NCBI RefSeq assembly: GCF_003918875.1
Contig: NW_025766092.1
Coordinates: forward strand, 806,001 to 870,000
From: Haliotis rubra
Taxonomy: Eukaryota
Direction of reading: 5' to 3'
Length of the DNA stretch: 64,000 nucleotides
Both the position numbers and the translations under genes were made by a program. How positions within the stretch are numbered: the first letter of the stretch is position 1; the number at the start of each line of letters is the position of its first letter. Under the pieces are notes generated by a model that made no database searches, had not been told where the DNA came from, and worked only from the letters and a program-made list of their open reading frames with translations. This document shows positions 6,120 to 54,562 of the stretch, piece by piece.

Positions 6120-6674
6120 TCAGCCATAGTTTGATGCTGTGGGATCTATAGGTGGTGTCAAGTGGTTGAGAACTCGAACAGGACTAAACTTATCACGAAG
6201 CCTTTTCTCAGGAGTAAAATTATTGTTCCTTTCAAATGTGAAATGACTCTCATTGGTGAGCACAGAATCTGGTGTTGCTAACGCTGTCCTGTTGCTTTCA
6301 CTAGCGGTCTCAAAACCACACAAACTGTCCGTGGAAGAATAGCTCCACCGGTCTGCCAAAAAGAGCTTGGGAGACTTGTGGGGGGTTAGCTGGGAGATAC
6401 AGGCACTTAGTTTGGCTTGAGCGTTAACTGTTGCTGGAACATAGCAGTCCATGGGATCATCTAAAGCGGTATCAAAACTCCCTGATCTACTGCTACGCTG
6501 TGATGGTTCACCATCATCGTCATCATCATCACTAGATTCACCTTCTGTACAGTGATTGTCCTCAAAGGCATAGTTTGTGGCTTGACCTTCAGATCCAGTT
6601 ATCACTATCTGGGGTTTAGCGCCACTGGAAGCAGCTAACTCAGCCATGAACTGGTAAATATAACGATACTCATC
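6120..6674 (-). CDS. RPTP terminal coding exon: DEYRYIYQFMAEL followed by a ~170-aa Ser/acidic low-complexity tail and TGA
   Basis: ttttcag acceptor; EYRYIY closes D2; continues through the 175-aa ORF 6120..6647. Confidence 0.9.
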   Translation of the reverse strand, partial: DEYRYIYQFMAELAASSGAKPQIVITGSEGQATNYAFEDNHCTEGESSDDDDDDGEPSQRSSRSGSFDTALDDPMDCYVPATVNAQAKLSACISQLTPHKSPKLFLADRWSYSSTDSLCGFETASESNRTALATPDSVLTNESHFTFERNNNFTPEKRLRDKFSPVRVLNHLTPPIDPTASNYG

Positions 6675-7293
6675 CTGAAAAAATGAACATGTAGAAAATC
6701 AGAATAAATCTCTGTGGTATGATTCCTGTTATCTATAATGCATGTGCTTTTTTAGCGAGTGACACAGAGGATGGGAGCATGGGTGTTTGAGTTGAATGAG
6801 TGAGTGGGTGAGTAAGTGAGTGAGTGGGTTGGTGGATGAGTGAGTAAGGTGAGTGTGTGGGAGAGTGAGTGCATGCGTAGTTGTGTAAGTGAGTTGTCGC
6901 AAACCAATTCCAAGATTCTCACAATATGTTAAAAACATATCTGATTAATCGTATCAAATGTTGAATGGTATATTGGTACTACTTAAAGAAGAATTTGAAA
7001 CAAAAATGTAAATTCTAGTTTTCAAATTAAAAAATCTACCATGGTATCATTAGTTTCTAATTTCTATAAGCAACATGTCTCGACACAAACCTTAGTTTAA
7101 GACTAGCAAAATTTTCATTCCATTATTTCTTATTCTTTCAGAGTAAAAAGCGTTATAAATGACAATAAAATGTGAAATAAGTTCAACCGAAAATGTTGCT
7201 CGAAGAGTTCCTAAAAACAAATGAGCCAGTTTCTGTAACCATTGTGGTACAACATGTATGTAGCAAGTATATGTTTTTATTTATTAGACTTAC

Positions 7294-7429
7294 AACATTT
7301 GGCACAAGTTGGGGTCTGTTTCGTTTGATGAGCCTTACAGCGTTGAAGATGTCCACCTCACCATCCGTCCGCAGCTGTTCCGAGCAGATGTTGATGCCGC
7401 AGTAGATGCCAATCCTACAGGAACCATCT
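7294..7429 (-). CDS. RPTP D2 exon: (K)DGSCRIGIYCGINICSEQLRTDGEVDIFNAVRLIKRNRPQLVPNV
   Basis: 136 nt; VDIF.AVR..RP motif; acag/gtaag. Confidence 0.95.
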
Positions 7430-7516
7430 CTGTGGGAACAAGAATACACACATATAAGATAATCACCTATGCAGTCTTTGTGTAATGATGCTAGCTGCTG
7501 ATACAAAACACAGGCA

Positions 7517-8620
7517 TTAACAGGGGTTGTATCATGTTATTAACAGGGGTTTTTTTCTGGTTACTAACAGGGATTGTATCATGTTATTAACAGGGATTGT
7601 TTCATGTTATTTACAGGGATTATATCATGTTATTAACAGGGATTATATCATGTTATTAACAAGGATTGTATCATGTTATTAACAGGGATTATATCATGTT
7701 ATTGACAGGGATTGTATCATGTTATTAACAGGGATTATATCATGTTATTAACAGGGATTGTATCATGTTATTAACAGGGGTTTATCATGTTATTAACAGG
7801 GATTATATCATGTTATTGACAGGGATTGTATCATGTTATCAACAGGGATTGTATCATGTTATTAACAGGGATTGTATCATGTTATTAACAGGGATTGTAT
7901 CATGTTATTAACAGGGATTGTATCATGTTACTAACAGGGATTGTATCATGTTATTAACAGGGATTGTTTCATGTTATTTACAGGGATTATATCATGTTAT
8001 TAACAGGGATTATATCATGTTATTAACAGGGATTGTATCATGTTATTAACAGGGATTGTATCATGTTATTAACAGGGATTGTATCATGTTATTAACAGGG
8101 ATTATATCATGTTATTAACAGGGATTGTATCATGTTATTAACAGGGGTTTATCATGTTATAAACAGGGATTATATCATGTTATTGATGAGGATTGTATCA
8201 TGTTATCAACAGGATTGTATCATGTTATTAACAGGGATTGTATCATGTTATTAACAGGGATTTATCATGTTATTAACAGGGATTATATCATGTTATTGAC
8301 AGGGATTGTATCATGTTATTAACAGGGATTATATCATGTTATTGACAGGGATTGTATCATGTTATTAACAGGGATTGTATCATGTTATTAACAGGAATTA
8401 TATCATGTTATTAACAGGGATTGTATCATGTTATTAACAGGGATTATGATCAAGTTATTAACAGGGATTATGATCAAGTTATTAACATGGGATTATATCA
8501 TGTTTTTAACAGGGATTGTTTCATGTTATTAACAGGGATTGTATCATGTTATTAACAGGGATTATATCATGTTATTAACAGGGATTATATCATGTTACTG
8601 ACAGGGATTGTATCATGCAT
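7517..8620. repeat. 23-bp minisatellite (aacagggattgtatcatgttatt)n
   Basis: Visible tandem array, ~48 units. Confidence 0.97.
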
Positions 8621-8790
8621 TTCACAGGGGATTTATGTGGGATTCATGTGGGATTTATTATGTGATTGTCATGGTTACCTGTGTATAACCTTGAAAAGTT
8701 AGCATCCAGTGTGTCACTACAGTGTCATAATATCATGGTCATCTTCAGTGTATATCATTGTCAGTCCCCTTATTTTTTCACACAGTAAAG

Positions 8791-9028
8791 GTTTGTTTGT
8801 TGTTTAACCCCGTACTCAGCAATATTCCAGCTATATGGCGGAGGCCTGTAAATAATCAAGTCTGGACCAGATGATCCAGTGATCAGCATTATGAGCATCA
8901 ATCAACACAATTGGGATACGATGACATGTCAACCAAGTCGGCGAGCCTGACCACCCGATCCTGTTAGTCGCCTCTTACGACAAGCATGGGTTACTGAAGA
9001 TCAATTGTAACCTGGATCTTCATGGGTA
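8791..9028 (-). mobile_element. Full-length SINE, family B (non-tRNA structured head)
   Basis: Reverse complement of the 26220 and 41079 copies. Confidence 0.9.
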
Positions 9029-9059
9029 CTCGGTATAGGTATTGTTGATTCAGGACACA

Positions 9060-9220
9060 GGGCGGTAGGGTAGCCTAGTGGGTAAAGCGTTCGCTCGTCA
9101 CGCCGAAGGCCCGGGTTCGATTCCCAACATGGGTAAAATGTGTGAAGCCCATTTCTGGTGTCCCCCGCCGTGATATTGCTGGAATATTGCTAAAAGCGGC
9201 TTAAACTCACTCACTCACCA
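9060..9220 (+). mobile_element. Full-length tRNA-derived SINE, family A
   Basis: A box tagcctagtgg, B box ggttcgattcc, (actc)n tail; 14-bp TSD tgattcaggacaca. Confidence 0.93.
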
Positions 9221-9332
9221 TGATTCAGGACACATCAATCTACTCAATCTTGAACTAATCACCTACACCACTTTTCATCCATCAACCAAACCAACAAAGT
9301 AAATAATGCACAAAGCAACTTGCTTTTTCAAA

Positions 9333-9775
9333 AGCAAGAGTGCTGATCTAGAGATGACCTACTTGGGCATGACACTGATCGGGTTCATGGGTTCTTCAAG
9401 GCAAGAGTGCTGATCTAGAGATGACCTACTTGGGCATGACACTGATCGGGTTCATGGGTTCTTCAAGGCAAGAGTGCTGATCTAGAGATGACCTGCTTGG
9501 GCATGACACTGATCGGGTTCATGGGTTCTTAAAAGCAAGAGTGCTGATCTAGAGATGACCTACTTGGACATGACACAGATTGGGTTCATGGGTTCTTCAA
9601 GGCAAGAGTGCTGATCTAGAGATGACCTACATGGACATGACACAGATTGGGTTCATGGGTACTTAAAGGAAAGGATGCTGATGACCTACATGGACATGAC
9701 ACAGATTGGGTTCATGGGTTCTTAAAGGAAAGGATGATGATGACCTACTTGGACATGACACAGATTGGGTTCATA
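9333..9775. repeat. ~67-bp tandem repeat copying the 3' end and donor site of exon 9749-9924
   Basis: About 6 extra copies of gacctac(t/a)tgg(g/a)catgacac..gggttcat. Confidence 0.92.
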
Positions 9776-9924
9776 GGGTTGGTCTTCTTCTGCCATTGGT
9801 CAGCACTGTTCATGACGTAGGTCAGTGACTTGGCCGACACATGGATGCGGGATCGGCTACTGCTGCCTGTGATCTGGAACATCTTCACCACCAGGTCATC
9901 ACTAGAGGGCGCTTTACTTGTAGT
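9749..9924 (-). CDS. RPTP D2 exon: TTSKAPSSDDLVVKMFQITGSSSRSRIHVSAKSLTYVMNSADQWQKKTNPMNPICVMS(K)
   Basis: 176 nt; ends in phase 2 at the P-loop, like the D1 counterpart; gcag/gtagg. Confidence 0.88.
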
Positions 9925-10525
9925 CTGCCAATCACAAGATAACATTTACAGACAATGATATAAGCAACTTGAAGAATTTTGGCTATATCCTTTAAATTGT
10001 TTGGGATTCAATTTTCTGAAAGACAAGGAATTTTTGTGCCTATATCCCATTAAATTTTCTATGGTAGTCTTCCATCCAAAGGCCATTGTAGACTCTCAGT
10101 CTCCAGTTTGGTCACCATTCAAGCACAGATAAGCTTTTTCCAGACTGTAAATTAGTCTGGGACAAACAATCCAGTGATTGATGTTGTGGGCAAGAATGCA
10201 CACCATTGGGATACCCTGACATGCAATCCCCAAGCCTGACCACCCAATTCATTTCACAACTCTATGACAGGCTAAGTTGCAGGGATGAATTCTAACCCAG
10301 AAAGCCAATGGGGAATACTGCTTTTTGGAAAAGGAAAGGTGCATTTTGTAATTTGTTGTATTTGTAACAAGTTTACTTTTGGTATGCTTTAGTACGCTTC
10401 AAGCAAAAGTTGGAGTACAAGCCACTGCACCACTCTCTGGATCTGCTTCAGAACACATCCGCTCATGGAATTACCACAATTGAAAACCTTTTTGTGACTT
10501 ATCACTGTGATAAAAGCTTACTTAC

Positions 10526-10648
10526 CTTGCGAATAGAAAATGCTCGGATGACAATCTGTGTGTACCGACCACATCCCAGGTACTTGACTGAGATTGGACC
10601 ATATTTGCTCTCATCTTCTAGTTGTTTTGGCCAGAAACGTGGATATGA
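10526..10648 (-). CDS. RPTP D2 exon: SYPRFWPKQLEDESKYGPISVKYLGCGRYTQIVIRAFSIRK
   Basis: 123 nt; FWP..YGPISV motif; gcag/gtaag. Confidence 0.93.
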
Positions 10649-11390
10649 CTGCAAGCACACAATAAACCACTACTTGACTCAGATGAATAAAACATTTACT
10701 TCACAGAATATTTAACATGCTTATACAAGCTGTGTCACAACTGTTTGAAAAATTGAGTGATGACCATGTAGCTGATAGCATGAGTGAAAATCCATGTCAG
10801 TGAAATGATGAAACCGTCGAAATCAGTTCTTATGGCAAGCATAGGAAGCTGGGGATAGATTCTTACAGGGAGTCCCTCAGGGACCAAGATGCAGAAGACA
10901 TGTAAACAAAATTACAAATGTTGCCGATGATAAGCATGGAGTGCACAAAGATTTCTTTCAGTGTATACCAAACAGTATTGTGGTTACCATGGTTACCATA
11001 TCCTTTCATCCCTTCACCTTAACTAACATATTTCTTCATGCTATTACTTGGTACCCCAGGTTGTCCAGTATTGGACTCCATCTTCAAAACAGAAACTGAA
11101 ATGAATTCGGGAGATGGATATCCCTATGAAAACGCTTTCATTTTCAATAGTGAATCCTCATTCAAATCCTCGTCCGATGAAATATGGCATATCTTGAGGA
11201 TAGTGATTGAAAAGGTACCAGTATGTAGTTTGAATTTCTTTTATGTGTAGCCAGTTTAGGATGTGCATAATGACCGACTTTCTTCTTGGAAAGTCCATCA
11301 CCCTCAGTAGAGACATAGAGCTGATAACTGAAAACTGGATGTAGGGAGACCTGCAGCCGAGACAGCAGACGTCGAAGTATGGACACTCAC

Positions 11391-11522
11391 CCTGGAGAAC
11401 TTGACGTCATTGAGGACAACAAGTGTGTTGATCTTGTAGTCATACAACAACCTCCAGATGTCGTTCACTGTGTTCTTCTTTGGCCACTGTGTACAGAGGT
11501 AGGTGTTTTCCTGACTGTACCC
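11391..11522 (-). CDS. RPTP D2 exon: GYSQENTYLCTQWPKKNTVNDIWRLLYDYKINTLVVLNDVKFSR
   Basis: 132 nt; TQxP..NTV.DxWRL motif; gcag/gtgag. Confidence 0.95.
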
Positions 11523-11696
11523 CTGCATTACAACAAATAAACTTATTTAGTTCATTCTTAAAATCATCAAACCACTAGGAGATCCTGGTTACTTTTGGTC
11601 CCGAGCAAGCAATACTGACCAAATGGATCAGTAATTGGGGTCAGTGACTTGCTTCATTGAATGTCTTCATTATCTCATTCAGTGCATTTTCCAGAC

Positions 11697-12256: not shown

Positions 12257-13245
12257 GAACCTGACTGGAATATTTACAGGCAGGTGTCTGGAATATTGCT
12301 GAGTACAGAGTTTAACAATGAAAAAACAATAAAAACATTTCCATGCATTCTTGTATTTTTAACTAAAGATACAGCACAAAATGGACATGGGTTAGACATA
12401 CAGAGTCAGGGCATCTTGTTGAAATATATCTGAGTATGTCATAGGAATCCTGTTGATACAGATGTCTGTAATCTTCAACAAAGCATCACCGAGAACTTAC
12501 CTTGTCAGTAATTGAAAACAGTATGACGCACGATGAAGGTTATTTCTGGTAAGACATTACTCTTAACTTAATTATCCTCAGTGACATGCCTCATTTGTAT
12601 ACAGTGGTATGTTTTGTGTGCCTCAGACTGAAAGCTACACTGAATCAGAAGAATACAACAGTGTGCAGAGTGTCAATCTATGAATTTAATGCAATCAATT
12701 TTCAATTTCTTTTTTTCAAACAGAAAGAAATTCATGTCAAGTAATCCTACATCCCCAAAGACTGTATTTGTATCAGAACCTAAATATTCCCTCTTGGAGG
12801 CATACCACAAACCTATTCATCTCATTGTCTGAGTCTCACAAAGACTCTTGTATTGGACATAGCCGTGTACAATGCATACATTACCTACCAACACCGGCGA
12901 GACATTATACACACACGTTGGCAAGATGGAGTGTGTGCATTCAAATTGCTGTTGTGTGTATGAGGGGCAGGCATGTTGAAGTCATACAATGGAAAGTCGA
13001 TCAGGAATTCAGCTCTAATTACTAATTCAGTTGATAAATTGCAGACATTACTCCTGTGAAAGTGAATAAATTTCAGACAAGGTTTCTTTGAAAAATATTG
13101 ATTATGACGAGGATTAATTGTGGAGTACAAGATGTGTTTACAGATGATGCATTAGTAACGTCCTATTTGTCTTTATACAGAAACTGAAACATGTTATAGG
13201 GAAGCTGCAACACCTCGGGGAGAATATATTGTTGAGAAGTTTATA

Positions 13246-16200
13246 AGCCAATGTTTCAGAAGGGATATGTTATTGGGAAGTATTACAGCCAATGTTTCAG
13301 AAGGTATATGTTATTGGGAAGTATTACAGCCAATGTTTCAGAAGAAATATGTTATTGGGAAGTATTACAGCCAATGTTTCAGAAGGTATATGTTATTGGG
13401 AAGTATTACAGCCAATGTTTCAGAAGGGATATGTTATTGGGAAGTGTTACAGCCAATGTTTCAGAAGGAATATGTTATTGGGAAGTGTTACAGCCAATGT
13501 TTCAGAAGGGATATGTTATTGTGAAGTATTACAGCCTATGTTTCAGAAGGTATATGTTATTGGGAAGTATTACAGCCTATGTTTCAGAAGGGATATGTTA
13601 TTGGGAAGTGTAACAGCCAATGTTTCAGAAGGGATATGTTATTGGGAAGTGTTACAGCCAATGTTTCAGAAGGGATATGTTATTGGGAAGTGTTACAGCC
13701 AATATTTCAGAAGGAATATGTTATTGGGAAGTATTACAGCCTATGTTTCAGAAGAAATATGTTATTGGGAAGTATTACAGCCAATGTTTCAGAAGGAATA
13801 TGTTATTAGTAAGTATTACAGCCTATGTTTCAGAAGAAATATGTTATTGGGAAGTATTACAGCCAATGTTTCAGAAGATATATGTTATTGGGAAGTATTA
13901 CAGCCAATGTTTCAGAAGGTATATGTTATTAGGAAGTATTACAGCCAATGTTTCAGAAGAAATATGTTATTGGGAAGTATTACAGCCAATGTTTCAGAAG
14001 GTATATGTTATTGGGAAGTATTAAAGCCAATGTTTCAGAAGGTATATGTTATTGGGAAGTGCTACAGCCAATGTTTCAGAAGGTATATGTTATTGGGAAG
14101 TGTTACAGCCAATGTTTCAGAAGAAATATGTTATTGGGAAGTATTACAGCCAATGTTTCAGAAGGTATATGTTATTGGGAAGTATTACAGCCAATATTTC
14201 AGAAGGTATATGTTATTGGGAAGTATTACAGCCAATGTTTCAGAAGGTATATGTTATTGGGAAGTATTACAGCCAATGTTTCAGAAGGAATATGTTATTG
14301 GGAAGTGCTACAGCCAATGTTTCAGAAGGGATATGTTATTGGGAAGTATTACAGCCAATGTTTCAGAAGGGATATGTTATTGGGAAGTGTTACAGCCAAT
14401 GTTTCAGAAGGTATATGTTATTAGGAAGTATTACAGCTAATGTTTTAGAAGGTATATGCTATTAGGAAGTATTAGGTTTCAGAAGGGATAATTGGGAAGT
14501 GTTATGTTTCAGAAGGGATATGTTATTACACAGCCAATGTTTCAGAAGGTATATGTTATTGGGAAGAGGTATACAGCCAATGTTTCAGAAGAAGGTATAT
14601 GTTATTAGGAAGTATTACAGCCAATGTTTCAGAAGGTATATGTTATTGGGAAGTATACAGCCAATGTTTCAGAAGGTATATGTTATTGGGAAGTATTACA
14701 GCCAATGTTTCAGAAGGTATATGTTATTGGGAAGTGTTACAGAAGGTATATATGTTATTACAGAAGTGTTTCCATATGTTATTGGGAAGTATTACAGCCA
14801 ATGTTTCAGAAGGTATATGTTATTGGGAAGTATTACAGCCAATGTTGTTTCAGAAGGGATATGTTATTGGGAAGTGTTACAGCCAATGTTTCAGAAGGTA
14901 TATGTTATTGGGAAGTGTTACAGCCAATGTTTCAGAAGGGATATGTTATTGGGAAGTGTTACAGCCAATGTTTCAGAAGGTATATGTTATTGGGAAGTAT
15001 TACAGCCAATGTTTCAGAAGGGATATGTTATTGGGAAGTGTTACAGCCAATGTTTCAGAAGGTATATGTTATTGGGAAGTGTTACAGCCAATGTTTCAGA
15101 AGGGATATGTTATTGGGAAGTATTACAGCCAATGTTTTAGAAGGTATATGTTATTGGGAAGTGTTACAGCCAATGTTTCAGAAGGGATATGTTATTGGGA
15201 AGTATTACAGCCAATGTTTCAGAAGGGTGATATGTTATTGGGAAGTATTACAGCCAATGTTTCAGAAGGTATATGTTATTAGGAAGTATTACAGCCTATG
15301 TTTCAGAAGGAATATGTTATTAGGAAGTATTACAGCCAATGTTTCAGAAGATATATGTTATTGGGAAGTGTTACAGCCAATGTTTCAGAAGGTATATGTT
15401 ATTGGGAAGTATTACAGCCAATGTTTCAGAAGGTATATGTTATTGGGAAGTATTACAGCCAATGTTTCAGAAGGTATATGTTATTGGGAAGTATTACAGC
15501 CAATGTTTCAGAAGGTATATGTTATTGGGAAGTGTTACAGCCAATGTTTCAGAAGGGATATGTTATTAGGAAGTGTTACAATGTTTCAGAAGGTATATGT
15601 CATTGGGAAGTGCTACAGCCAATGTTTCAGAAGGTATATGTTATTGGGAAGTACTACAGCCAATGTTTCAGAAGGTATATGTTATTGGGAAGTGTTACAG
15701 CCAATGTTTCAGAAGGTATATGTTATTGGGAAGTGCTACAGCCAATATTCAGAAGGTATATGTTATTGGGAAGTATTACAGCCTATGTTTCAGAAGGAAT
15801 ATGTTATTGGGAAGTGCTACAGCCAATGTTTCAGAAGGGATATGTTATTGGGAAGTATTACAGCCAATGTTTCAGAAGGGATATGTTATTGGGAAGTGTT
15901 ACAGCCAATGTTTCAGAAGGTATATGTTATTAGGAAGTATTACAGCTAATGTTTTAGAAGGTATATGCTATTAGGAAGTATTACAGCAAATGTTTCAGAA
16001 GGGATATGTTATTGGGAAGTGTTACAGCCAATGTTTCAGAAGGGATATGTTATTGGGAAGTGTTACAGCCAATGTTTCAGAAGGTATATGTTATTGGGAA
16101 GTATTACAGCCTATGTTTCAGAAGAAATATGTTATTGGGAAGTATTACAGCCAATGTTTCAGAAGGTATATGTTATTGGGAAGTATTACAGCCAATGTTT

Positions 16201-17365
16201 CAGAAGGGATATGTTATTGGGAAGTGTAACAGCCAATATTTCAGAAGGTATATGTTATTGGGAAGTGTTACAGCCAATGTTTCAGAAGGTATATGTTATT
16301 GGGAAGTATTACAGCCAATGTTTCAGAAGGTATATGTTATTAGGAGGTATTACAGCCTATGTTTCAGAAGAAATATGTTATTGGGAAGTGTTACAGCCAA
16401 TGTTTCAGAAGGTATATGTTATTGGGAAGTATTACAGCCAATGTTTCAGAAGGTATATGTTATTAGGAAGTATTACAGCCTATGTTTCAGAAGAAATATG
16501 TTATTGGGAAGTGCTACAGCCAATGTTTCAGAAGGTATATGTTATTGGGAAGTGTTACAGCCAATGTTTCAGAAGAAATATGTTATTGGGAAGTGCTACA
16601 GCCAATGTTTCAGAAGGTATATGTTATTGGGAAGTGTTACAGCCAATGTTTCAGAAGGAATATGTTATTGGGAAGTGCTACAGCCAATGTTTCAGAAGGT
16701 ATATGTTATTGGGAAGTGTTACAGCCAATGTTTCAGAAGGGATATGTTATTGGGAAGTATTACAGCCAATGTTTCAGAAGGGATATGTTATTGGGAAGTA
16801 TTACAGCCAATGTTTCAGAAGGATATGTTATTGGGAAGTGTTACAGCCAATGTTTCAGAAGGTATATGTTATTGGGAAGTGTTACAGCCAATGTTTCAGA
16901 AGGTATATGTTATTGGGAAGTATTACAGCCAATGTTTCAGAAGGTATATGCTATTAGGAAGTATTACAGCAAATGTTTCAGAAGGGATATGTTATTGGGA
17001 AGTGTTACAGCCAATGTTTCAGAAGGTATATGTTATTGGGAAGTGTTGGGGTAGCCAATGGTTAAAGTATGATATAGGATGTTATTCCCCACATGGGAAG
17101 TGTTACATTTCTGCCCCATGCCGTGAATGTTTCTAGAAGGTATATGTTATTCAGTTATTGGAAGTGTTACAGCCAATGTTTCAGAAGGGATATGTTATTG
17201 GGAAGTATTACAGCCAATGTTTCAGAAGGTATATGTTATTGGGAAGTGTTACAGCCAATGTTTCAGAAGGTATATGTTATTGGGAAGTGTTACAGCCAAT
17301 GTTTCAGAAGGTATATGTTATTGGGAAGTGTTACAGCCAATGTTTCAGAAGGTATATGCTATTGG
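13246..17365. repeat. 41-bp satellite (gccaatgtttcagaaggtatatgttattgggaagtattaca)n, ~100 units
   Basis: Visible array; source of the many spurious periodic ORFs. Confidence 0.98.
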
Positions 17366-17613
17366 CAAGTTTATCAGCTAATGTTCTTAGAGGGCTATTT
17401 TATACAGACTTATATTCAAATTTTTGTTTACTTTTATTCAAACGTTTGTGAATGTGTTCAAAGAAAACCAACATGGTGGAGGTCTCAGAAAGTACAAGTT
17501 GGGGGAAACACACAGGCATGGGTAACATCATCATACAGATGTACTTAGACTTAAAGTAAAGTGAAATTAAAAGAAGAACAGTGTATTGATTGTTGTGTTT
17601 ATGTAGTACTTAC

Positions 17614-17693
17614 ATCAACATACACAGCATTGATGAAGTCTGTGCCACTGTCTCCCGAGTCATTTGTCATCAAGTAGGGCCGGGCTCGCTCAG
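17614..17693 (-). CDS. RPTP D2 exon: (P)ERARPYLMTNDSGDSGTDFINAVYVD
   Basis: 80 nt; RPYL and DFINAVYVD motifs; tcag/gtaag. Confidence 0.94.
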
Positions 17694-21625: not shown

Positions 21626-21725
21626 GAGGCAGCATCATGATGTCGCGGCTCTTGCTGCGGTTCTCAACACGATGTCCACTGGCACAGTCTCCAATACTCA
21701 GCCGAGGAACAACCGTATGTAATGT
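21626..21725 (-). CDS. RPTP D2 exon: TLHTVVPRLSIGDCASGHRVENRSKSRDIMMLP
   Basis: 100 nt; NxxK(N/S)R...LP motif; tcag/gtgag. Confidence 0.92.
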
Positions 21726-22641: not shown

Positions 22642-22791
22642 CTGGAACTCTCTGTCCAGCTTCTGTTGTTTTGGTTCAGCGTTCTTGCTGTACGACCTGA
22701 GATATGTAGCGGGAAGTAGTGTCCCCGGACACACTGTCCAGCCGGTCTGTATGTACATGGCCACAGTGTCGTAGATGAGGCGATACTGGCC
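22642..22791 (-). CDS. RPTP D1 end / linker exon: GQYRLIYDTVAMYIQTGWTVCPGTLLPATYLRSYSKNAEPKQQKLDREFQ
   Basis: 150 nt; QYxxIY and LDREF motifs; acag/gtgca. Confidence 0.92.
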
Positions 22792-23205
22792 CTGTAAAGA
22801 ACATAACAAGATCATGTCAGTCTCTGAGACAGGTAGTTGGAAGAAGTGTCTTTGGCCACAGTGTCATAGATGAGGCGATACTGGCCCTGTAAAGAACATA
22901 ACAAGATCATGTCAGTCTCTGAGACAGGTAGTTGGAAGAAGTGTCTTTGGCCACAGTGTCGTAGATGAGGCGATACTGGCCCTGTAAAGAACATAACAAG
23001 ATCATGTCAGTCTCTGAGACAGGTAGTTGGAAGAAGTGTCTTTGGCCACAGTGTCGTAGATGAGGCGATACTGGCCCTGTAAAGAACATAACAAGATCAT
23101 GTCAGTCTCTGAGACAGGTAGGAAGAAGTTGGAAGAAGTGTCTTTGGCCACAGTAAAGAACATAGATGATGTCCTCTGAGACAGGTAGTTGGAAGAAGTG
23201 TCTAC
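22757..23205. repeat. 95-bp tandem repeat copying the acceptor and first ~11 codons of exon 22642-22791
   Basis: 4 near-identical units plus a broken fifth; ORF track repeats CSLQGQYRLIYDTVA. Confidence 0.95.
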
Positions 23206-23909: not shown

Positions 23910-24061
23910 CAGTGTCCTGACCATATTTTTGCGGAAGCGCCGTAGGTGCAGCACACAGCTGTAGATGTCTACCCTCTCCTCAGCCTCAATCTGCTTCAGA
24001 CAATAGTCCACAGCGATGAACACTGCTGTCCTGCCACACTGCTGTCCTGCCACCTCCGCAC
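23910..24061 (-). CDS. RPTP D1 P-loop exon: (R)CGGGRTAVFIAVDYCLKQIEAEERVDIYSCVLHLRRFRKNMVRTL; frameshifted as assembled by a 16-nt tandem duplication
   Basis: gtag/gtaag boundaries; 152 nt = 136 in-frame nt + a second copy of cactgctgtcctgcca (24021-24036, 24037-24052). Confidence 0.9.
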
Positions 24062-34332: not shown

Positions 34333-34484
34333 CTACAATGCACAAGTACAGGTCCTGATGATGTACTCATGAAACTGCTGACTCGGCGTCTCACATCCAA
34401 AATAAACCCTGGGTCTGCACATTCGTTGTCATGGAAACCAAGCATTTCAAAATGCCTCACCACCCTCTCTTCTGAGCTACCTTC
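34333..34484 (-). CDS. RPTP D1 exon: EGSSEERVVRHFEMLGFHDNECADPGFILDVRRRVSSFMSTSSGPVLVHC(R)
   Basis: 152 nt; RxVRHF and GPVLVHC motifs; ends in phase 2 just after the catalytic Cys; gcag/gtaag. Confidence 0.94.
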
Positions 34485-38926: not shown

Positions 38927-39058
38927 TTTCTGTATACGAAATGTCCGGATGTTGAGCTGTGCCATGAAAACAGCATCTTGGCTCCATATATGGATGTCCC
39001 CGTGGCGGACGTACTTCTTCACACCGAGGAAGACATCCCAGTACTTCTCACATTGTTG
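38927..39058 (-). CDS. RPTP D1 exon: QQCEKYWDVFLGVKKYVRHGDIHIWSQDAVFMAQLNIRTFRIQK
   Basis: 132 nt; CxxYW motif; tcag/gtaag. Confidence 0.93.
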
Positions 39059-39712
39059 CTGAGGGAGAGATACACATATATAACAGCTTTATATGTGACC
39101 AGAATCAGGGATCTACCATATTTACTCAACTAATAACTTCAACGAAAGGCAAGTATAGTGACAAAATTTATTGCAACTATGAGGCCAGATCAATTCTATG
39201 TATTGTTTTATGGATTTTTGTCCTCAGAAAACATAAAGACAGGAGGGAAAAGTAATATTCCTTCTAAATACTAAAAGTATTTTACTTTTGGCAATTTATG
39301 AAGTGTATATGGGGCAAAAAACAATCTAAAAACATTTTCTTGAAAGTCTACATTTTTAGCCATTACAAACATTACGATTTTACTTTTTGAGTGGGAGAAA
39401 TTAATTATTATTTTTTTTCTTATTCTTGAAAAAGTACGACCGGCGGATCCGTAAAACAAGAAATAAAACTGGTCTGGCCTGACTTAAATTTTCCAAAATA
39501 TCAAAAGTCAATTTCTGAAAAGGGGAAATTCATTAAACATATCAAACCTATTTCAGTGGTGTGGCCTAAAGAACCTGTGCAGTCTTGCAAATGTGTGTGA
39601 CAAATGTTTTCATTGCCTGACGTTTATACATGGTTGCTTTGTCTATGTACCAGAAATCTTAAAACAGTGGTTAAACAGCTCTACAGATATATCAGGCAGA
39701 GGTCAGTTGCAT

Positions 39713-40082
39713 NNNNNNNNNNNNNNNNNNNNNNNNNNNNNNNNNNNNNNNNNNNNNNNNNNNNNNNNNNNNNNNNNNNNNNNNNNNNNNNNNNNNNNNN
39801 NNNNNNNNNNNNNNNNNNNNNNNNNNNNNNNNNNNNNNNNNNNNNNNNNNNNNNNNNNNNNNNNNNNNNNNNNNNNNNNNNNNNNNNNNNNNNNNNNNNN
39901 NNNNNNNNNNNNNNNNNNNNNNNNNNNNNNNNNNNNNNNNNNNNNNNNNNNNNNNNNNNNNNNNNNNNNNNNNNNNNNNNNNNNNNNNNNNNNNNNNNNN
40001 NNNNNNNNNNNNNNNNNNNNNNNNNNNNNNNNNNNNNNNNNNNNNNNNNNNNNNNNNNNNNNNNNNNNNNNNNNNNNNNNNN
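39713..40082. other. Assembly gap (370 N) inside an RPTP intron
   Basis: Run of N; the flanking exons join in frame, so no exon is needed in the gap. Confidence 0.99.
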
Positions 40083-40208
40083 AGACAAAATATTTCAGCA
40101 TTGTTCAAGAATGGGTTATATTTTGTCAACATAATACACAGGCACACAGCCATAATATCAACTGGTTGTCCCACAGCCAAACACATTGTAATGATAGGAC
40201 TAAAACTG

Positions 40209-40412
40209 TGAGTGAGTGAGTTTAGTTTTATGCCGCACTCAGCAATATTCAAGCTATATGGTGGCGGTCTGTAAATAATCGAGTCTGGACCAGACAATCC
40301 AGTGATCAACAGCATGTGCATCGATCTGCACAACTGAAAATCGATGACATGTGTCAACCAAGTCGGCGAGCCTGACTTCCCAATCCTTTTAGTGGCTTCT
40401 TTCGACAGGCAT
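40209..40412 (-). mobile_element. SINE family B, 5'-truncated
   Basis: Reverse-complement match. Confidence 0.88.
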
Positions 40413-40847
40413 AACTAAAGAAGTTGCTTTTTCTGTTATTCCACCCAAAATTACAGCATTGTGTACATTGTTGATGTGTGAATCAACCTTTGTCCTGACA
40501 TTGTGAATAATTAAAACAACAGTTAGTGTCTGTGACTACCTTTTTATGACCAACATCCTGTTGGGGTCCAATTAACCAGAACAGAATGTGAATATAACCA
40601 GGCTATTTGGAATAAAAACATAAACATAGATTTTATAAACATTTAGGATAAAATCTGAAGTTGAGTTAATAAGGAGGGGGGGGGGGGAGTGGATATATTT
40701 GGAAGGAGATGAGAGAATTGATCAGGATGGGTGGCCTAGGTGGAAGGGTAATAAACTCATTCATCAACATTAAATCTGTAATTTGTTCTTGGATCCAATA
40801 TTACATGCATAATGTGCTATTTCTATTTTAACCTTTAAAATACTTAC

Positions 40848-40945
40848 TGCAGCATTTTCGAAAAGTCCAGTTGCCATGACAACACAATGTACCCCTTCCT
40901 GCCAGATCATGTGCCAGAACGCTGCCAAAGTTCTGCTTGTGGGCC
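40848..40945 (-). CDS. RPTP D1 exon: (G)PTSRTLAAFWHMIWQEGVHCVVMATGLFENAA
   Basis: 98 nt; FWxMIWQE and VVM motifs; tcag/gtaag. Confidence 0.95.
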
Positions 40946-41822: not shown

Positions 41823-41928
41823 CTCTGGATCCATTCCCTGCAACAGCTTCCTCTCTGGAGTACTGTTTTACATCTCAAACTCTCCTATTACTAACACAGC
41901 ACAGAATGTCCCTCATACCTTAAAAGTC

Positions 41929-41960
<32 letters not shown>

Positions 41961-42740
41961 TGCATTTGTTAAAGCGCCTAATGTCCAACCAGTGCTGCTC
42001 AGTGGCGCTGTGCAGAGAAAGTGGAGAAACTAGTAGGTAGCTAGAAAAAAGATGAGTTTTTAGTTGGCTCCTAAATGCTTCCAGGGAAGATACTGATCTC
42101 AGTTCAACTGGCAGAGAGTTCCACAAAGCTGGTGCAGCAGCACTGAAAGCTCTGTCTGCCATGGATGTTTTTGTAGCTGTCATTTTCAGGCTGCCTCTTT
42201 TCTCAGACCTCAAGACACGATTTGGACGATAGATTTCAATGATGTCTTTGAGGTAAGCTGGTGAATGGATGTCATAGAGTGTTGAGTAGGTGATGCAAAT
42301 TATTTTGCACTGTATTCTCCTCTTTACTGGGAGCCAGTGCAACGACCTCAGCACAGGGGTGATGTGTTCCTGACATTTTGTCCTGTATATGATCCTGGCA
42401 GCTCTGTTTTGTACAAGCTGGAGATGTTGGATTGCTGCTGCTCCTGACACGAGAGAGTTACAGTAGTCTAGGCGTGAGATGATGTATGACTGAAGTAAAA
42501 GTTTGGTTGTGTCAATGCCCAAATAGCGGCGGATTTTTCCTATTCGGCGGAGATGAAAGGTTGCTGATCTTGCTGCTGTTAGGGCTTGTGATTCTGGTGA
42601 CATTGAAGAACGGAAAAACAACACCAAGATTCTTCACCTGGGGCACAGGGCAGATAGACTGATCTCCAACTGTGAGACTACACTTGCCTATTTTGCGAAG
42701 CTTCATGTGAAAGCAAGTTTGGCTGAATATCTGCATTCAA
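41929..42740 (-). mobile_element. 5'-truncated L2/CR1-group LINE: C-terminal part of ORF2, 3' UTR and (TAT)n tail
   Basis: VKNLGV, SRLDYCNSL, LHWLPVKRRI, RAFSAAAPALWNSLP motifs; microsatellite tail. Confidence 0.9.
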
Positions 42741-46973: not shown

Positions 46974-47010
46974 CTTGAGCAGCGATGTACTCCTTTGTCA
47001 GGTAATAGCC
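46974..47010 (-). CDS. RPTP D1 exon: GYYLTKEYIAAQ(G)
   Basis: 37-nt exon with the YIAxQG motif; ccag/gtagg; phase fits neighbouring exons. Confidence 0.92.
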
Positions 47011-47731: not shown

Positions 47732-49624
47732 AAACACACTTGAAGCATGAAGCTGAGTATATGTTGGTAATATTTCAACAGCAACATTGCCTTATGTGTT
47801 TGGACCTCAAACAGGCACACATGTTCAACAGCATATTAACTATGACCTGAGCAATGAAACAAAAATATACGCCACAAATATAAAATATTGTTCAACTGAT
47901 GAAAAAACCTTACAGCTTGTATTCATTCTTTGTTATTTGATCACCTGGGTCTCATTTCACATAATGTTCTCAGAGCCATGACAGCCGTAAGGGAATATGG
48001 TAGTTACAATCATCACAGCACTGATGGGTTCATGTGTGTGATACCACAACAGACAATACTACCCAGGAGACCATTTTGAGATGCCATGATTGGTTAGGTT
48101 CCTAGTATCCCACACTTATTGTCAGTGGCCACTAATGAGAATTGGGTGATTCAGAATGTGACATGGCTGATGGCGCAGTATTGTGTCTGGATGACACAGA
48201 TCTTTGGCCATGTCAACAAACATGAGGCTGAAGCAAACATATAACGTTGGAGAATAATCAGACTGGATTATCTCCTCTGGTTCCAGTGGACATAAAAGGC
48301 ACAATGGTGGTGAAAAGTATATGAATGGACCTCTAACATTGTATTGTTTAACACCCTTGATGCCAGAGGGATATATATGTCCCTTCTTTTACACCTTAGC
48401 TTTGAAGTCAAATATAATTCAACACACATCACAAATACATTTAAAAGTTTATATTCTGCAAGAAATTTTCTGAATCTTGATATCATCCAGTGTCATTTTA
48501 GTCAAAGCAAAATTGCTGAAAATGACCTCTGAAAAGTAGGTAGCTCGTAAAGGTCGCCACTTTTTACACATTATGAAATCGCCATTCACAGAGTTATTTG
48601 TGGGTTGTTTTGAAATGTAAATATCAGTTATGTACAAACACTATTACTAAGTTCAATGATAATTTTAGAATGTTGCTGATGGAAAACACACAAACACAGT
48701 CACCAAAGTCAGAATTCCACCATAGTGGATAGTGTCTTCTCGTAGGCTGGTTCTTATTACATCACATATATTCCACCCTCATCTGGGACAGTTACGTCAT
48801 TGAACCCCTCATACAGTTTAGGATCACATAATGGTGCTTGTAACAAATAGCAAGAAGAAGAAATCAAGAAAATAATGTAGGTGTGAAAACAACTGCTGTG
48901 CTTGTTTAAAATGTAAGCAAACAAATATTGAATGAAGCATTGTGAGAGAGATTCATTCATCTATTAGTTGCATACACTGGATCAATACTGTTAGAATATG
49001 TATAGAAAGAGAACTGTAGCGAGCATCAGGAAGTTAAAAATATATACTGTCACAAAATCATGTACAGTGACAACAGCAATTATCAGCATTTCTCACTATT
49101 TCTCTTACCCGGTAGTTACAATGAAATAATGAACACAAATAACAATTATTTACATAAAAACTTTATGTACAAAACAATCCCGAATCAAGGAGAGGTCCCT
49201 CACAAAATCATGAGTACCAATTCCAGTGTACTAATCATTTTGGAAAAGATCAGTCCCCATTTAGTGATGTCATCAACATTGTTGTATAGGTAATTTCTTT
49301 GCGGTGAAGTTCTTTTGATTAGGAGTTAACACCACAATCCTGTCCTCCTGCTTATGGTTTAAAAATTTTGATGGATTATTTTGAATAGCTTATACATTTC
49401 AATTGCCTACATTTGCCGAGTTCAATATCATATCATACATGGATGATGGCTATGAGTTATTTTTATCTTTTAAAAGTTTTCGTTTGTTTGAACCATATTT
49501 ACATAAGAAATTGACTCATTTATCATAGTACATCATATTTCAACCTTTTTATAAGTGCAAAAAGAAGAAGAAAGTAGGCATAACTGCAACATGTGTGTAG
49601 TTGATGTGTCATATTCAATATTGC

Positions 49625-50310
49625 TACTTTATTACCCACATGGTCAACGTATGGGTAGTTGCATACTAATTCTAACGGTTTGATTGGATAACCGATGACC
49701 TCTCAATTAGGCCATGTTGTGACGGAACTACTTGTTCATTCATAACAAACACGTGAATTCATTCATTCTACAACTTAGATGCATTGTGGGAATGTAAACA
49801 TTGCGAACGTTGCCATATCGCTGTTTAATTGAGAGTCGAACTGAGACATTATAGTCGAAAAACATAAACGCAATGTTTCCACCAGTGATGTCAGCCGAGT
49901 TAAGCAACTGCAAACCAAGAAAAGGGGTGCTATACGAGGCGATGACAACTGACATGCATCTTGACGTCGGTTACCAATGGAGTTGACGAGAATGACGTAA
50001 TGACGTCAATACAGTGTGACGTCATGCAAAAGTGAACTACAGAACAACATTCTTCCGCAACCTCTTTATGAAATCGGTTTCGGTTTGAAACCATAACAAT
50101 AACAAAAATACGCTATTTTGTCAATTTAATGCATGTAAGACGTGGGTAATAAATAAAATACCACACTCAGTCTCATAACATTCGAATTATACGAAACTCA
50201 TGACCTTCCTATGGTTTCTGACCTCGCTTTTCGCTCGGTCAGATAACATAGGAAGAACACTCATTTCATATAATTCGTATGCAATGAGACCTCGTGTAGT
50301 TGTCTCTATT
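49625..50310. mobile_element. Second long-hairpin non-autonomous element
   Basis: ttattacccac / gtgggtaataa inverted pair; ~140-nt fold-back at 50160-50300. Confidence 0.6.
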
Positions 50311-52044
50311 TAGTTAAACAGGTGACTTAACAGCAATTACAATTAATCTTGTAAGTAAAACAGAAGAAAGTGAATCATGTTTTTATTTGTTCACATATAG
50401 GGGATATTTCATGTGTCTAGTGAAATATGATGTACCTGTTATTGAGTGACATGAAAACATAAATATTCGTGAAAATATCATGCTTTTCACAACTCTTGAT
50501 GACAGATACATGAACTATTCTCTTCATTATATGCTTCCCATTTGGTTTAATCAAAGTTAAACATTATTTATAAGAGAAAATTTCATTAACAAGATCTGAA
50601 CACACTGACTCAGTGTGGGTGCATAGACTGACTCACAAAAACGTTATACATGTATTGTGATGATAGAATATAAAATGTTAACTATATTTCTACAAGAATT
50701 GAATACAAAAATATAAACCATGGCAAATTGTAGAGCATTATTGTGATAGGAGCAATATTTCATTATATGATCATGAAGAGAACTGTCCAAAACAAGGTAA
50801 AGTCATATTCTGATATATGCTTTGAAATAATCATTTTGATATATATATTACTCATGTTGAATATGTGCATGTTTTGTCCATATTAACTATCTAACTGTTT
50901 ATCTTTTCAGGACATTATTCAGTTGGTAAAACCAGTCATTTTATGTTCTGTCAAAAGAGTGTCAAAATTTGACTGGCAAACCAAGATTGTTCATATTTTG
51001 CATGGAAAAATATACTTAATCAACATGCCAATATCGTCTTTCTCTGACGTTGCAAAATGCATAAAAAAAGCAATGACGTCAATTAAAATGGTGTGATATT
51101 TTCTGTAAATTCATTAAATTTGAAGATAAGATAGGTACTCTGCTAATAATGCTGCAGCATTATTCATAATGCATCTACTAAAACAGGAGAATATCAGAAT
51201 CGAAGAGCTAAATTATATATTAGATAGGGCCATCCATTTTGCTATTACCAGTGCCTCTTTTGTGATTTTGTATCATTTCATCACTTGTGATACTACAAAA
51301 ATGTATCTGGTTACAATGTGGACCACTATACAAGAATAGTTTGGTTTACCAAAAACAAAACATTGCAAAAAATAGTGTCCTCATCCACAGCCAATTGAAA
51401 TGACCTTGTGTTAAGCATACTGGAGTTATGCGCCCTTATCTTTATGCATGTTCATTTGACGCCATTGAGGAGTTTTCATCATTTATGGCAAACCCTTTTT
51501 ATACTGGATGTGTAATGTCACACATAAGCATACAAGTCTATTTGATTTATTGTTGTGTCGTTCAGATATCAGGCAGTATTTTGTTTGCTCCCACTTTCCC
51601 TAAAGATGCCAAAAAATAAACTTCACAAACAGTGCCTTTTATGGTGTACAATAAAAAGTGGAGAAATTTACTGTTTTTAACAAAAAATCGGAAAACATTT
51701 AATAGTGTTTACTTTTCAAGTAAGTATATTTACTTGAATTTACACAATCAGATTTCATATTCTATAAAGCTGTGCAATTTTATATACGAAGGTAGATCAA
51801 ACACAATTCTTGCACAATTTTCACTTTTCAAATGTTATGAAAATGTGAGTCAGTAAAAAGCTTGGCAACCAGGGGGTCATAAATGACATAAAAATATTTC
51901 TTATATCTTATTCCTTGTCATGGAGAGCTTGAGATTTATTCTTCACTGATTGAGACTCCATATCTTCTACTTTACAAAGTGCATCATGAAGTCATAATAC
52001 AGGTGTGTGTTAGTATTAATACCTCACTGTTTCACTCATTCCAG

Positions 52045-52892
52045 TTCACTGTAAATATCATGACACTGTGATTCACTGATGTCATGACACTATGATTGAA
52101 GGACATCATGACACTGTCATTCACTGACATCATGACATTGTCATTCACTGACATCATGACACTGTGATTCACTGACATCATGACACTGTGATTCACTGAC
52201 ATCATGACACTGTCATTCACTGACATGACACCGTGATTGACTGACATCATGACACCGTGACATTCACTGACATCATGACACTGTCATTCACTGACATCAT
52301 GACACTGTCATTCACTGACATCATGACACTGTGATTCACTGACATCATGACACTGTCATTCACTGACATCATGACACTGTCATTCACTGACATCATGACA
52401 CTGTCATTCACTGACATCATTCACACATGACACTGTGATTCACTGACATCATGACACCATGATTCACTGACATCATGACACTGACACTGTCATTCACTGA
52501 CATCATGACACTGATATCCTGTGACACATCATTGACTGACATCATGACACTGTCATTCACTGACATCATGACACTGTCATTCACTGACATCATGACACCG
52601 ATGATTCACTGACATCATGACACTGTGATTCACTGACATCATGACACCGTCATTCACTGACATCATGACACCGTGATTCACTGACATCATGACACCGTCA
52701 TTCACTGACACTGACATCATGACACATGATACCGTCATTCACTGACATCATGACACCGTGTCATTCACGACATCATGACACTGTCATTCACTGAGATTCA
52801 CTGACATCATGACACCGTGATTCACTGACATCATGACACCGTGATTCACTGATATCATCACACCGTGATTCACTGATGTCATGACACTGTGA
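52045..52892. repeat. 24-bp minisatellite (gacatcatgacactgtcattcact)n
   Basis: Visible array. Confidence 0.97.
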
Positions 52893-54485
52893 ACTGAAGC
52901 ACATATAAAGGCTTATGGGGTTGTAACATTAATATCCCATGAGAAATATTATTTTCAGGGTAAGATAGTTTCAGACAATACAAATCAATACACATTGATT
53001 GGAATGTGAAGAGAATCTATATCTATCAATACGATACAAGATAAGATCAAATGCATTGAGACATTAATTGATTATCAAGGGATTGATTTTCCTTCATGCT
53101 TGTTTACAGAGATGAAAAATTAATGTGTCAACATTTGTATGAAATGACTTGGAAACATGTTATGCGACTTATTTTGTTATTTCATCCAGTAGGTGAGTGT
53201 CATTATCGACTTGGAATATGCCTCAATATGTGTGACAGTATGTCGTCTCAATGTAAAAACATGGCCACCACTGGCATCAGCACAGCACAAACAGTATAGT
53301 CCTATTTAGCTGCAGGATTAATTGGCTGTTGCATCACATGTTCCTGACCTTGATAATCTAGACAATATAATTATATCTTTGCATAAACAAGTTCTAAAGA
53401 GAAGAGCATTTTGATTGGTTATATATATATATAGGTCATATATATAGTTATACCGATAACAAAATTGGGAATATCATTATCTATATCAGGTATTTCCAAA
53501 ATACGAAAAAATCAATAATGGTGAAGCTGGGTCATATATAATATATTCCATAGATTTTCAGTTTCAAGTACTTTCAGCTATGGCTGGATGATCAGTAAGA
53601 AGAAAGAATAATTAATAAGAGTTGCTATATCCTTAGAAGATCGTTATTCACAGATTTATTAAAACTGTTATATTACAGACTGTAATTCAACATTTTATGA
53701 ACATTCATTGATCTTTTCATCAAAACAATCTGTCCATGTAGAATCAGCCAGTTGTATTGGAAAGGTCCGTACTTATAAAGGATTACTTTAGAATTTATTT
53801 AGCAGCCAGAATCACTATCCAAGTCGCTAATGCTTCATAAAAACTGTGCACCCTGCACGGACCTGAAAGATGCAGCAGGTAACTTAAGATGTTGCCCATT
53901 AGCAAAATGTACGAAACTCTCCTACGAGTGATATGGTTGACTAGTTGAGTTGTGTGGCAATAGACGTATAGGTAATATATCATAGACTTCCTGTTCACTT
54001 CATGCAACAGTCTTGTAAACAGGATATTGGATAGCAGCATGATTGCAGTACAACATCGGCCATCAGGGATTAGTCCCAGTCTGCTATGAAATATCACCAC
54101 TCACACACCGCTAACATGCTTTATGAAATCCGAGATGAATTTGTCCAAAAACATACAAGATTGATTTTCTGCTCTGTCGATAATGAGAATTTGATTCCTG
54201 CTCTATTTTTACAAATATTTAGGAAAATAAACAATCATTTGATCCTGTAAGTGATACGTCTGTGCGTTCACGTGCCTTTTATTTCAACGAGTTACCTAGT
54301 TTCTCAAAGGAATTCCAACACACGCTACGGAAACGTGAATAAAAGGGCTATTAAAAAGCAGGGTGCAGTTTCAAACAACATTAGGTTTTACATGCAAAGT
54401 GTTCCAGCAACAAAGTATCTCAAATGACAATTGCAAATTGTGGAATCTGTATTTTTAATAAATCAGAAAAGGCTGTTATACTCAC

Positions 54486-54562
54486 GTCAATGAAACTTGA
54501 GTTGATGTAGTCATTTTTAATATGAGGCGGTAAATCCCACAGTATCACTCGGCTGTGGTCGT
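54486..54562 (-). CDS. RPTP gene, first exon found (D1): xDHSRVILWDLPPHIKNDYINSSFID
   Basis: Manual translation gives PTP motifs DHSRV and DYIN(A/S)SFID; ccag acceptor, gtgag donor; 77 nt, starts in phase 1. Confidence 0.93.

Follow-up and report, generated by a model that had tools for sequence, protein, structure and literature searches.

The protein tyrosine phosphatases of receptor type (RPTPs) in the R4 group, RPTP-alpha and RPTP-epsilon, combine a short glycosylated ectodomain with tandem PTP domains, and RPTP-epsilon exists in receptor and cytosolic forms that arise from alternative 5' ends. A second precedent is vertebrate PTPRU of the R2B group. A report of 2020 describes it as unique among human RPTPs in that both of its domains are pseudophosphatases, and a role as a scaffold that binds and protects substrates has been proposed (PMC7320164). 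In the PTP catalytic motifs the cysteine is the nucleophile and the aspartate of the WPD loop the general acid, the tyrosine of the KNRY motif provides the deep phosphotyrosine (pTyr) pocket and the Q-loop glutamine positions the hydrolytic water (PMC7320164).

Here we analyse a 64,000-nucleotide stretch of the Haliotis rubra genome (contig NW_025766092.1, positions 806,001 to 870,000; hereafter the window). It contains the H. rubra orthologue, from residue 100 to 789, of a single-copy RPTP family that occurs throughout the protostomes and in which the catalytic centres of both tandem domains (D1 and D2) depart from the canonical motifs. We consider it probable, at roughly 0.6, that this is a family of double pseudophosphatases, PTPRU-like in function and of separate origin, as far as its sequences indicate. 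An initial annotation made from the DNA alone had noted the two unusual domains; the protostome-wide antiquity, the cytosolic isoform, the PTPRU precedent and the truncated protein encoded by the assembly go beyond it.

Gene model and catalytic motifs of the abalone protein

Exons were identified on the minus strand by a stop-to-stop scan combined with the reading of splice sites. The resulting model has 14 exons (A to N, Table 1), from 54562 down to the stop codon at 6120-6122, so that the annotated span 6120-54562 is bounded by the stop codon on one side and the start of exon A on the other. GT-AG ends, polypyrimidine tracts and compatible phases mark each of the 13 introns, the frame of exon F being given by the one-copy reading of a 16-nt tandem duplication only. 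The initial claim of intact splice sites hence stands for every intron, and that of intact phases holds once one 16-nt copy is dropped. When the H. rufescens RefSeq protein XP_046355427.2 (P0012, 789 aa) served as tblastn query, the identical 14 exons and borders came out for residues 100-789, with exon F matching residues 268-309 at 100% identity. A search of the exons with Pfam profile PF00102 gave collinear matches for two PTP domains, the first covering profile positions 14-35 (exon A), 50-79 (C), 129-176 (E) and 182-221 (F), the second 37-76 (J) and 85-123 (K).

Residues 1-99 of P0012 had no tblastn match anywhere in the window, which places the 5' exons beyond coordinate 64000; the exons for the transmembrane segment and ectodomain and for the D1 pTyr-recognition loop, which belong to these residues, thus lie outside it. 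The H. rufescens orthologue gene is 115 kb long. An upstream exon candidate near 61850 (NVKSRDRYWPD) was rejected, having the wrong phase and no match in the orthologue. An assembly gap lies in the intron between exons C and D. Exon C ends in ..GLFENAA and exon D starts with QQCEKYW.., both in phase 0, the junction has the canonical six-residue spacing from Glu to Cys and the orthologue is contiguous across it; the gap therefore costs no coding sequence.

The D1 acid loop GFHDNEC and the D2 motif KSRD were read directly on the minus strand, as first annotated. In an alignment with structures of the PDB, FHD of D1 falls under the WPD of PTP-sigma/LAR D1, so that WP is replaced by FH and the aspartate, aligned with the general acid, is retained. 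The D1 Q-loop appears upon splicing exons F and G (NMVRTL/GQY, the slash marking the exon border), which bears out the annotated MVRTLGQY; here MVRT stands for MVQT and the glutamine (Q262 of PTP1B) has become arginine. The D1 P-loop, HCRCGGGRT, had likewise been annotated. It is present in the one-copy reading and in three other abalones; in the sequence as assembled exon F is frameshifted. In the abalone orthologues the D1 pTyr-recognition loop reads NFNIKQEV, with Lys in place of Tyr. The mollusc D1 P-loop also has a second cysteine, at Cys+2 (C-R-C), and the two may form a redox pair.

One could take D1 for an ordinary active phosphotyrosine phosphatase whose motif changes are tolerated variants, since the CX5R core is there in the one-copy reading. 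We find this scarcely credible: of the four catalytic motifs, one lacks the pTyr-recognition Tyr, one the WP of WPD and one the Q-loop Gln, and the P-loop has Arg and Cys where active outgroup D1 domains have Ser and Ala.

D2 has NRSKSRD in place of KNRY, with Asp for Tyr, and no WPD loop. Its P-loop, PICVMSK/DGSCR after splicing exons L and M, confirms the annotated exchange of the catalytic Cys for Ser and keeps the P-loop Arg. With Cys replaced by Ser, the KNRY Tyr by Asp and WPD lost, D2 is predicted to lack catalytic capacity. The D2 signature of the family is found in exon H (GDCASGHRVENRSKSRD) and across exons L and M (MSKDGSCR).

An orthogroup of protostomes and the history of its motifs

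The exon pieces were too short for a word-indexed search, which covers proteins of similar length only; an exhaustive search with the last exon reached an 880-aa protein of the whelk Babylonia, through which the whole family came to light. Orthologues were collected from gastropods, bivalves, Octopus, a chiton, Lingula, the annelid Owenia, a bryozoan, a flatworm, tardigrades and nematodes. When a nematode member was used as a further query, NP_001379493.1 of C. elegans, many other nematodes and arthropods from horseshoe crab to ants joined the set. The C. elegans member is probably T13H5.1, the name given to its orthologue in an Aphelenchoides record, and Drosophila Ptp36E may be the fly member. 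Family members are 600-900 aa long and have automatic database names such as 'receptor-type tyrosine-protein phosphatase kappa/mu/epsilon-like'. The closest proteins to the window model are the Haliotis orthologues (95-97% identical); in the family search, bit scores range from 450 to 2000 within Spiralia and then fall steeply to the vertebrate RPTPs, with 281 for a PTPRU-like protein of a shark.

In a joint tree of both domains the family D1s form one clade (Shimodaira-Hasegawa-like approximate likelihood ratio test, SH-aLRT, 94) and the family D2s another (99). Both clades follow the species tree, as a single-copy orthogroup would, and in both the Haliotis orthologues group with the other gastropods. 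No vertebrate RPTP subtype was recovered in this tree as a supported sister of the family. D1 is most like the D1 of PTP-sigma/LAR and of R2B (phmmer against PDB, E=1e-84), and the best PDB match of D2 is RPTP-epsilon D2 (E=7e-57). Assignment to one vertebrate subtype was rejected, with D1 pointing to R2A/R2B, D2 to R4 and the tree not resolving the matter. The AlphaFold model of the H. rufescens protein (mean predicted local distance difference test, pLDDT, 73; predicted template modelling score, pTM, 0.72) has two confident PTP domains and resembles the tandem crystal structures of PTP-sigma, LAR and RPTP-alpha with template modelling (TM) scores of 0.86-0.88 on target. Both sequence and predicted fold thus give a classical PTP domain twice in tandem.

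Two types of N-terminus occur. H. asinina (P0128), Patella, Mytilus, Lingula, Owenia and Octopus have a short ectodomain and a hydrophobic segment; other members begin with MGK..LL, and the H. rufescens and H. cracherodii models begin with MTNMGKK.. and have no hydrophobic segment. This indicates a receptor form and a cytosolic form, and the mollusc cytosolic MGK.. isoform is, by comparison of the protein models, a product of an alternative 5' end. In this, as in the short ectodomain before tandem PTP domains, the family resembles the R4 phosphatases, its two forms being exemplified by H. asinina P0128 and H. rufescens P0012. It differs from them in that D1 is nearest PTP-sigma/LAR and R2B, with no supported sister relation to RPTP-epsilon, and in that R4 D1 and D2 both keep canonical motifs.

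Motifs were surveyed in about 40 mollusc sequences, and the D2 signature block in 35 aligned family members. Every member sampled shows the D2 exchange of Cys for Ser, nematodes and arthropods as well as molluscs; outside the molluscs, the insect, crustacean, chelicerate, tardigrade, annelid, brachiopod and nematode orthologues have the D2 signature with this exchange in common. The D2 block GDCAGGHR..NR.K(S/N)RD is invariant in 35/35 aligned members and is the most conserved stretch of the protein, and the D2 P-loop follows the pattern S-x-(D/N)-G-x-x-(R/K). P0012 residues 370-394, which correspond to this invariant block of exon H, are the only part of D2 with an AlphaFold pLDDT below 50; the block may be a flexible or partner-dependent binding element.

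A canonical D1 WPD is absent in all sampled members. The D1 acid loop reads W-P/H-S/C-H in arthropods, W-E-L/V in nematodes and W-G-E in Lingula. Of the members sampled, Lingula and the clam Mya alone keep the D1 Q-loop Gln, and the residue at Cys+2 is never Ala. Among the sampled sequences, then, loss of the D2 cysteine and of the canonical D1 WPD is ancient and protostome-wide. Outside the molluscs the D1 P-loops read HC(S/N/G/C)(D/N/S)G..R(S/T)G, with no Arg at Cys+1, and the Q-loop residue is Glu, Asp, Asn or Gln, never Arg. On the mollusc stem D1 lost its pTyr-recognition Tyr, F-x-D/E took the place of WPD, the P-loop changed to HC-R-C-G-G-G-R/K-T/S-A, and Arg replaced the Q-loop Gln. HCRCGGG(R/K)(T/S) occurs in ~40 mollusc sequences and in all sampled gastropods and bivalves; Arg at Cys+1 is found in all mollusc sequences and the Q-loop Arg in nearly all.

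The P-loop Arg itself varies. In D1 it has become Lys in pteriomorph and unionid bivalves (oysters, also in the oyster cDNA contigs L001-L003, scallops, mussels and ark clam), in D2 in the heterodonts Mya, Ruditapes, Mactra and Mercenaria, and in both domains in the unionid Potamilus; the rest of the sampled family has Arg at both positions. Only changes between Arg and Lys are seen at these two positions, which suggests that positive charge is important in each pocket. In the one chiton sequence the D1 catalytic Cys is Gly.

Constraint was gauged by counting lineage-specific amino-acid substitutions among abalones. Over 693 aligned residues, 6 such substitutions are private to the one-copy model of H. 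rubra vs 10 to H. asinina, which gives no sign of relaxed constraint. Identity between abalone and oyster is 66% in D1 and 57% in D2, and the remodelled mollusc D1 is nearly frozen across gastropods and bivalves. The 3-5 kb oyster contigs L001-L003, from run-assembly cDNA, each hold an uninterrupted open reading frame of 865 codons, which indicates that the family is transcribed and spliced; they differ at 9-11 sites, all synonymous, and having been retrieved by identical protein they carry an ascertainment bias and give no estimate of the ratio of nonsynonymous to synonymous rates. The initial annotation had suggested a gene maintained with non-canonical centres and had named canonical orthologues together with decay in H. 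rubra as what would speak against this. Mollusc orthologues share the D1 motifs, D1 is as conserved as D2 and the H. rubra substitution count is the lower one; the odd motifs of D1 and D2 are, by these comparisons, maintained features and not the outcome of decay.

The acidic, Ser-rich tail after residue 627 of the H. rufescens protein is predicted to be disordered (AlphaFold). It contains PQIVIT, which fits the PxIxIT calcineurin-docking pattern. P(Q/K)IVIT(G) is kept in vetigastropods, limpets, caenogastropods and pteriomorph bivalves, close variants of this motif occur in Octopus (PTIVVT) and the chiton (PQIIVS), and the P(Q/K)IVIT motif was not found in the non-mollusc family members sampled. 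A second conserved tail block reads SGSF(D/E)TALDD.

A 16-nt duplication and the repeats of the locus

Exon E ends in ..VLVHC plus AG (donor AG/GTAAGC) and exon F begins with G TGC GGA GGT GGC AGG ACA. Immediately after these P-loop codons follows an exact 16-nt tandem duplication, the sole lesion in 2.1 kb of coding sequence. As assembled it shifts the frame of exon F, with a stop 27 codons past the Cys, and the assembly as it stands encodes a truncated protein. With one copy dropped, as the initial annotation had advised, the junction reads HCRCGGGRTAVFIAVDY, HCRCGGGRT is in frame and the 14 exons remain open to the natural stop, giving 694 residues. Each of the proteins of H. rufescens, H. 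cracherodii and H. asinina shows the one-copy sequence and an intact P-loop. An alternative weak donor (ATT/GTAGGT) was considered; it restores the frame and adds five residues to the P-loop (HCAEVAGQQCGRT), an insertion seen in no relative, which makes its use unlikely.

If the duplication were real and truncated the protein past the D1 P-loop, the H. rubra gene would be a recent pseudogene or null allele, with the tandem arrays at two other exon borders as further erosion. The duplication does stand in the assembly, where a strong donor and acceptor yield the frameshift, and contigs of the probable source sample break there, ending at 24024 and restarting at 24040, which suggests heterozygosity or complexity. 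No 16-nt deletion was reported for these contigs, and a simple heterozygote of one and two copies predicts breaks at 24037 and 24036, which does not fit those observed. A 62-nt query across the duplication matched no indexed public run, including the probable source sample, a weak result given that two 31-mers were sampled. In four small H. rubra runs, RNA only by guess, about half of the sampled words of the last exon were present. A 95-nt and a 67-nt array copy exon borders, although minisatellites fill the introns of the locus generally. Given also a single lesion and fewer lineage-specific replacements than in H. asinina, we judge a pseudogene improbable; the duplication is most likely an assembly or haplotype-level lesion or private allele, rather than old decay or a fixed pseudogene. 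In abalone annotation the gene is better kept, under a model that allows for a frameshift in the H. rubra assembly, than dismissed as a pseudogene.

In the 95-nt array the three upstream copies read GQYRLIYDTVA and then stop; they could act as decoys for the true acceptor at 22791, which lies downstream of them. The 67-nt array offers several potential decoy donors. A 41-nt minisatellite of ~4 kb fills much of the intron between exons I and J and accounts for the strong guanine-cytosine (GC) skew of that interval, and a 23-nt array lies between exons L and M. The 237-codon frame in the intron between exons B and C (..LDYCNSL..QNRAARI..) looks like the C-terminal part of a non-LTR (long terminal repeat) retrotransposon reverse transcriptase. 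The large 5' intron, upstream of exon A, also contains a long minisatellite with three open frames, which is probably a non-coding repeat.

Table 1. Exons of the RPTP gene and other features of the window (slashes mark splice points; residues are those of P0012).
Feature	Coordinates	Strand	Length	Details
Exon A	54486..54562	-	77 nt	starts in phase 1; ..DHSRVILWDLPPHIKNDYINSSFID, D1; residues 100-124; acceptor cag/AC, donor GAC/gtgagt
Exon B	46974..47010	-	37 nt	GYYLTKEYIAAQ; residues 125-136; splice sites read
Exon C	40848..40945	-	98 nt	GPTSRTLAAFWHMIWQEGVHCVVMATGLFENAA; Pfam PF00102 E=1e-7
Exon D	38927..39058	-	132 nt	QQCEKYWD...FRIQK; splice sites and tblastn
Exon E	34333..34484	-	152 nt	ends in phase 2; GFHDNEC at 34419-34439; P-loop start ..VLVHC
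Exon E His-Cys codons	34335-34340	-
Exon F	23910..24061	-	152 nt	length as assembled, 136 nt with one repeat copy; (R)CGGGRT, ..NMVRTL
Exon G	22642..22791	-	150 nt	GQYRLIYDTVA..., end of D1 and D1-D2 linker
Exon H	21626..21725	-	100 nt	..LSIGDCASGHRVENRSKSRDIMMLP, D2 family signature; KSRD, replacing KNRY, at 21642-21653
Exon I	17614..17693	-	80 nt	PERARPYL...TDFINAVYVD
Exon J	11391..11522	-	132 nt	GYSQENTYLCTQWP...; Pfam E=6e-9
Exon K	10526..10648	-	123 nt	SYPRFWPKQ...FSIRK
Exon L	9749..9924	-	176 nt	D2 region with WPD loop lost; ends ..PICVMSK
Exon M	7294..7429	-	136 nt	DGSCRIGIY... (D2 P-loop Arg kept) ..NRPQLVPNV
Exon N	6120..6674	-	555 nt	including stop; DEYRYIY.., then 170-residue acidic Ser-rich tail; PQIVIT at 6597-6614
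16-nt tandem duplication	24020-24051	-		GGCAGGACAGCAGTGT x2 on the coding strand, exact; Tandem Repeats Finder 2.1 copies, 100% match
95-nt x 4.1 tandem array	22758-23154	-		repeats exon G acceptor and 33 nt from the exon start
67-nt x 7 tandem array	9330-9780	-		repeats exon L 3' end (..PMNPICVMSK) and donor into downstream intron
Assembly gap (N)	39713-40082	.		within intron C-D (39059-40847)
41-nt minisatellite	13224-17385		~4 kb	123-nt higher-order unit; intron I-J
23-nt x 48 array	7516-8617			intron L-M
Open frame	41923-42633	-	237 codons	intron B-C; candidate reverse transcriptase
Minisatellite	~55980-57430	-		units such as CQGVYGQNVRECMDKMSGSVWTI

Binding or catalysis

The family shares with PTPRU the tandem D1 and D2 domains and a D1 in which the Cys is kept while the pTyr-recognition loop diverges, the WPD is non-canonical and the P-loop is altered; in both, these changes are evolutionarily conserved. 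The two are nevertheless not orthologous, the present family forming its own clade in both domain trees. The MAM/Ig/FN3 ectodomain of R2B is found in no family member, which have a short ectodomain or none; the substitutions FHD, HCRCGGGR and Gln to Arg are the family's own, and its D2 has Ser for Cys where the compared PTPRU-like D2 keeps the Cys.

D1 is strongly conserved while its catalytic residues have been replaced in several lineages, for which a non-catalytic binder is the simplest reading. The change of P-loop Arg to Lys in pteriomorph and unionid bivalves and of the nucleophile to Gly in the chiton lean the same way; in PTP1B and Yersinia PTP the former change costs orders of magnitude in kcat. 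The protein thus most likely binds phosphate groups rather than cleaving them, as far as its residues suggest. Both pockets, in which the positive P-loop residue is kept, would probably still bind phosphate or another anion without turnover, and the protein, tethered to the membrane or cytosolic, would act as a phospho-ligand binder, scaffold or competitor.

A different possibility, which the initial annotation had raised by comparing D1 with PTEN, is that D1 still works as an enzyme but on another substrate. The head group of a phosphoinositide or a peptide phosphorylated twice would be candidates. Without the pTyr-recognition Tyr the pocket would be wider, and Arg at Cys+1 and in the Q-loop would suit a multiply charged substrate. 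Lys stands at Cys+1 in the lipid phosphatases PTEN and PTPMT1, and among the receptors PTPRQ is a phosphatase of phosphoinositides. In abalone D1 the Cys and the Arg remain, as does an acidic residue under the WPD Asp, and the tight conservation of the two pocket arginines in molluscs fits a specific ligand. With PTEN this D1 shares the basic residue right after the catalytic Cys and an acidic residue two positions past an aromatic one in the acid loop. The PTEN P-loop is, however, of the HCKAGKGR type with two basic residues, whereas abalone D1 is basic at Cys+1 only and has Gly at Cys+4. There is no detectable homology to PTEN beyond the Cys-phosphatase superfamily and no C2 domain, and every match in sequence and predicted fold is to classical receptor PTPs in tandem, so that of the PTEN comparison only the basic residue at Cys+1 is left standing. 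Many bivalves have Lys in the P-loop and the chiton Gly for Cys, with the remainder of D1 conserved, and the wider family has no general acid altogether. On balance we hold a changed substrate to be unlikely, if well worth naming.

Several points nonetheless weigh against double pseudophosphatases. In abalone D1 the nucleophilic Cys and the P-loop Arg persist, and an acidic residue aligns with the WPD Asp, so that residual or altered catalysis is possible; an acidic residue occupies the WPD Asp position in all sampled mollusc D1s except possibly that of Octopus. The inactivity of D1 and D2 across the family is a prediction from sequence and modelled fold, and pseudophosphatase calls made from sequence have earlier been wrong or disputed, as for HD-PTP (PMC8269279). 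Two small H. rubra runs guessed to be RNA matched nothing on exon F, and if the frameshift is real and fixed the H. rubra copy is broken.

More speculatively, and with a good deal less confidence, the tandem family may have been free of catalysis since before the protostome radiation, with mollusc D1 and its two arginines serving as a reader of multiply charged phospho-ligands, or a slow enzyme, and the conserved PxIxIT-type tail motif, gained in molluscs at the same time, recruiting the live Ser/Thr phosphatase calcineurin.

Among the papers searched, none describes the family or its motifs and none is a functional study of its members, T13H5.1 appearing only in gene lists. An RPTP with two degenerate domains is already known from PTPRU. 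The role of inactive RPTP domains is an old open question, and here an independent family would have reached the same outcome as PTPRU. Its conservation extends from nematodes and insects as far as molluscs, and genetically tractable animals have one copy of it, so that a direct test of a purely binding tandem PTP would become possible.

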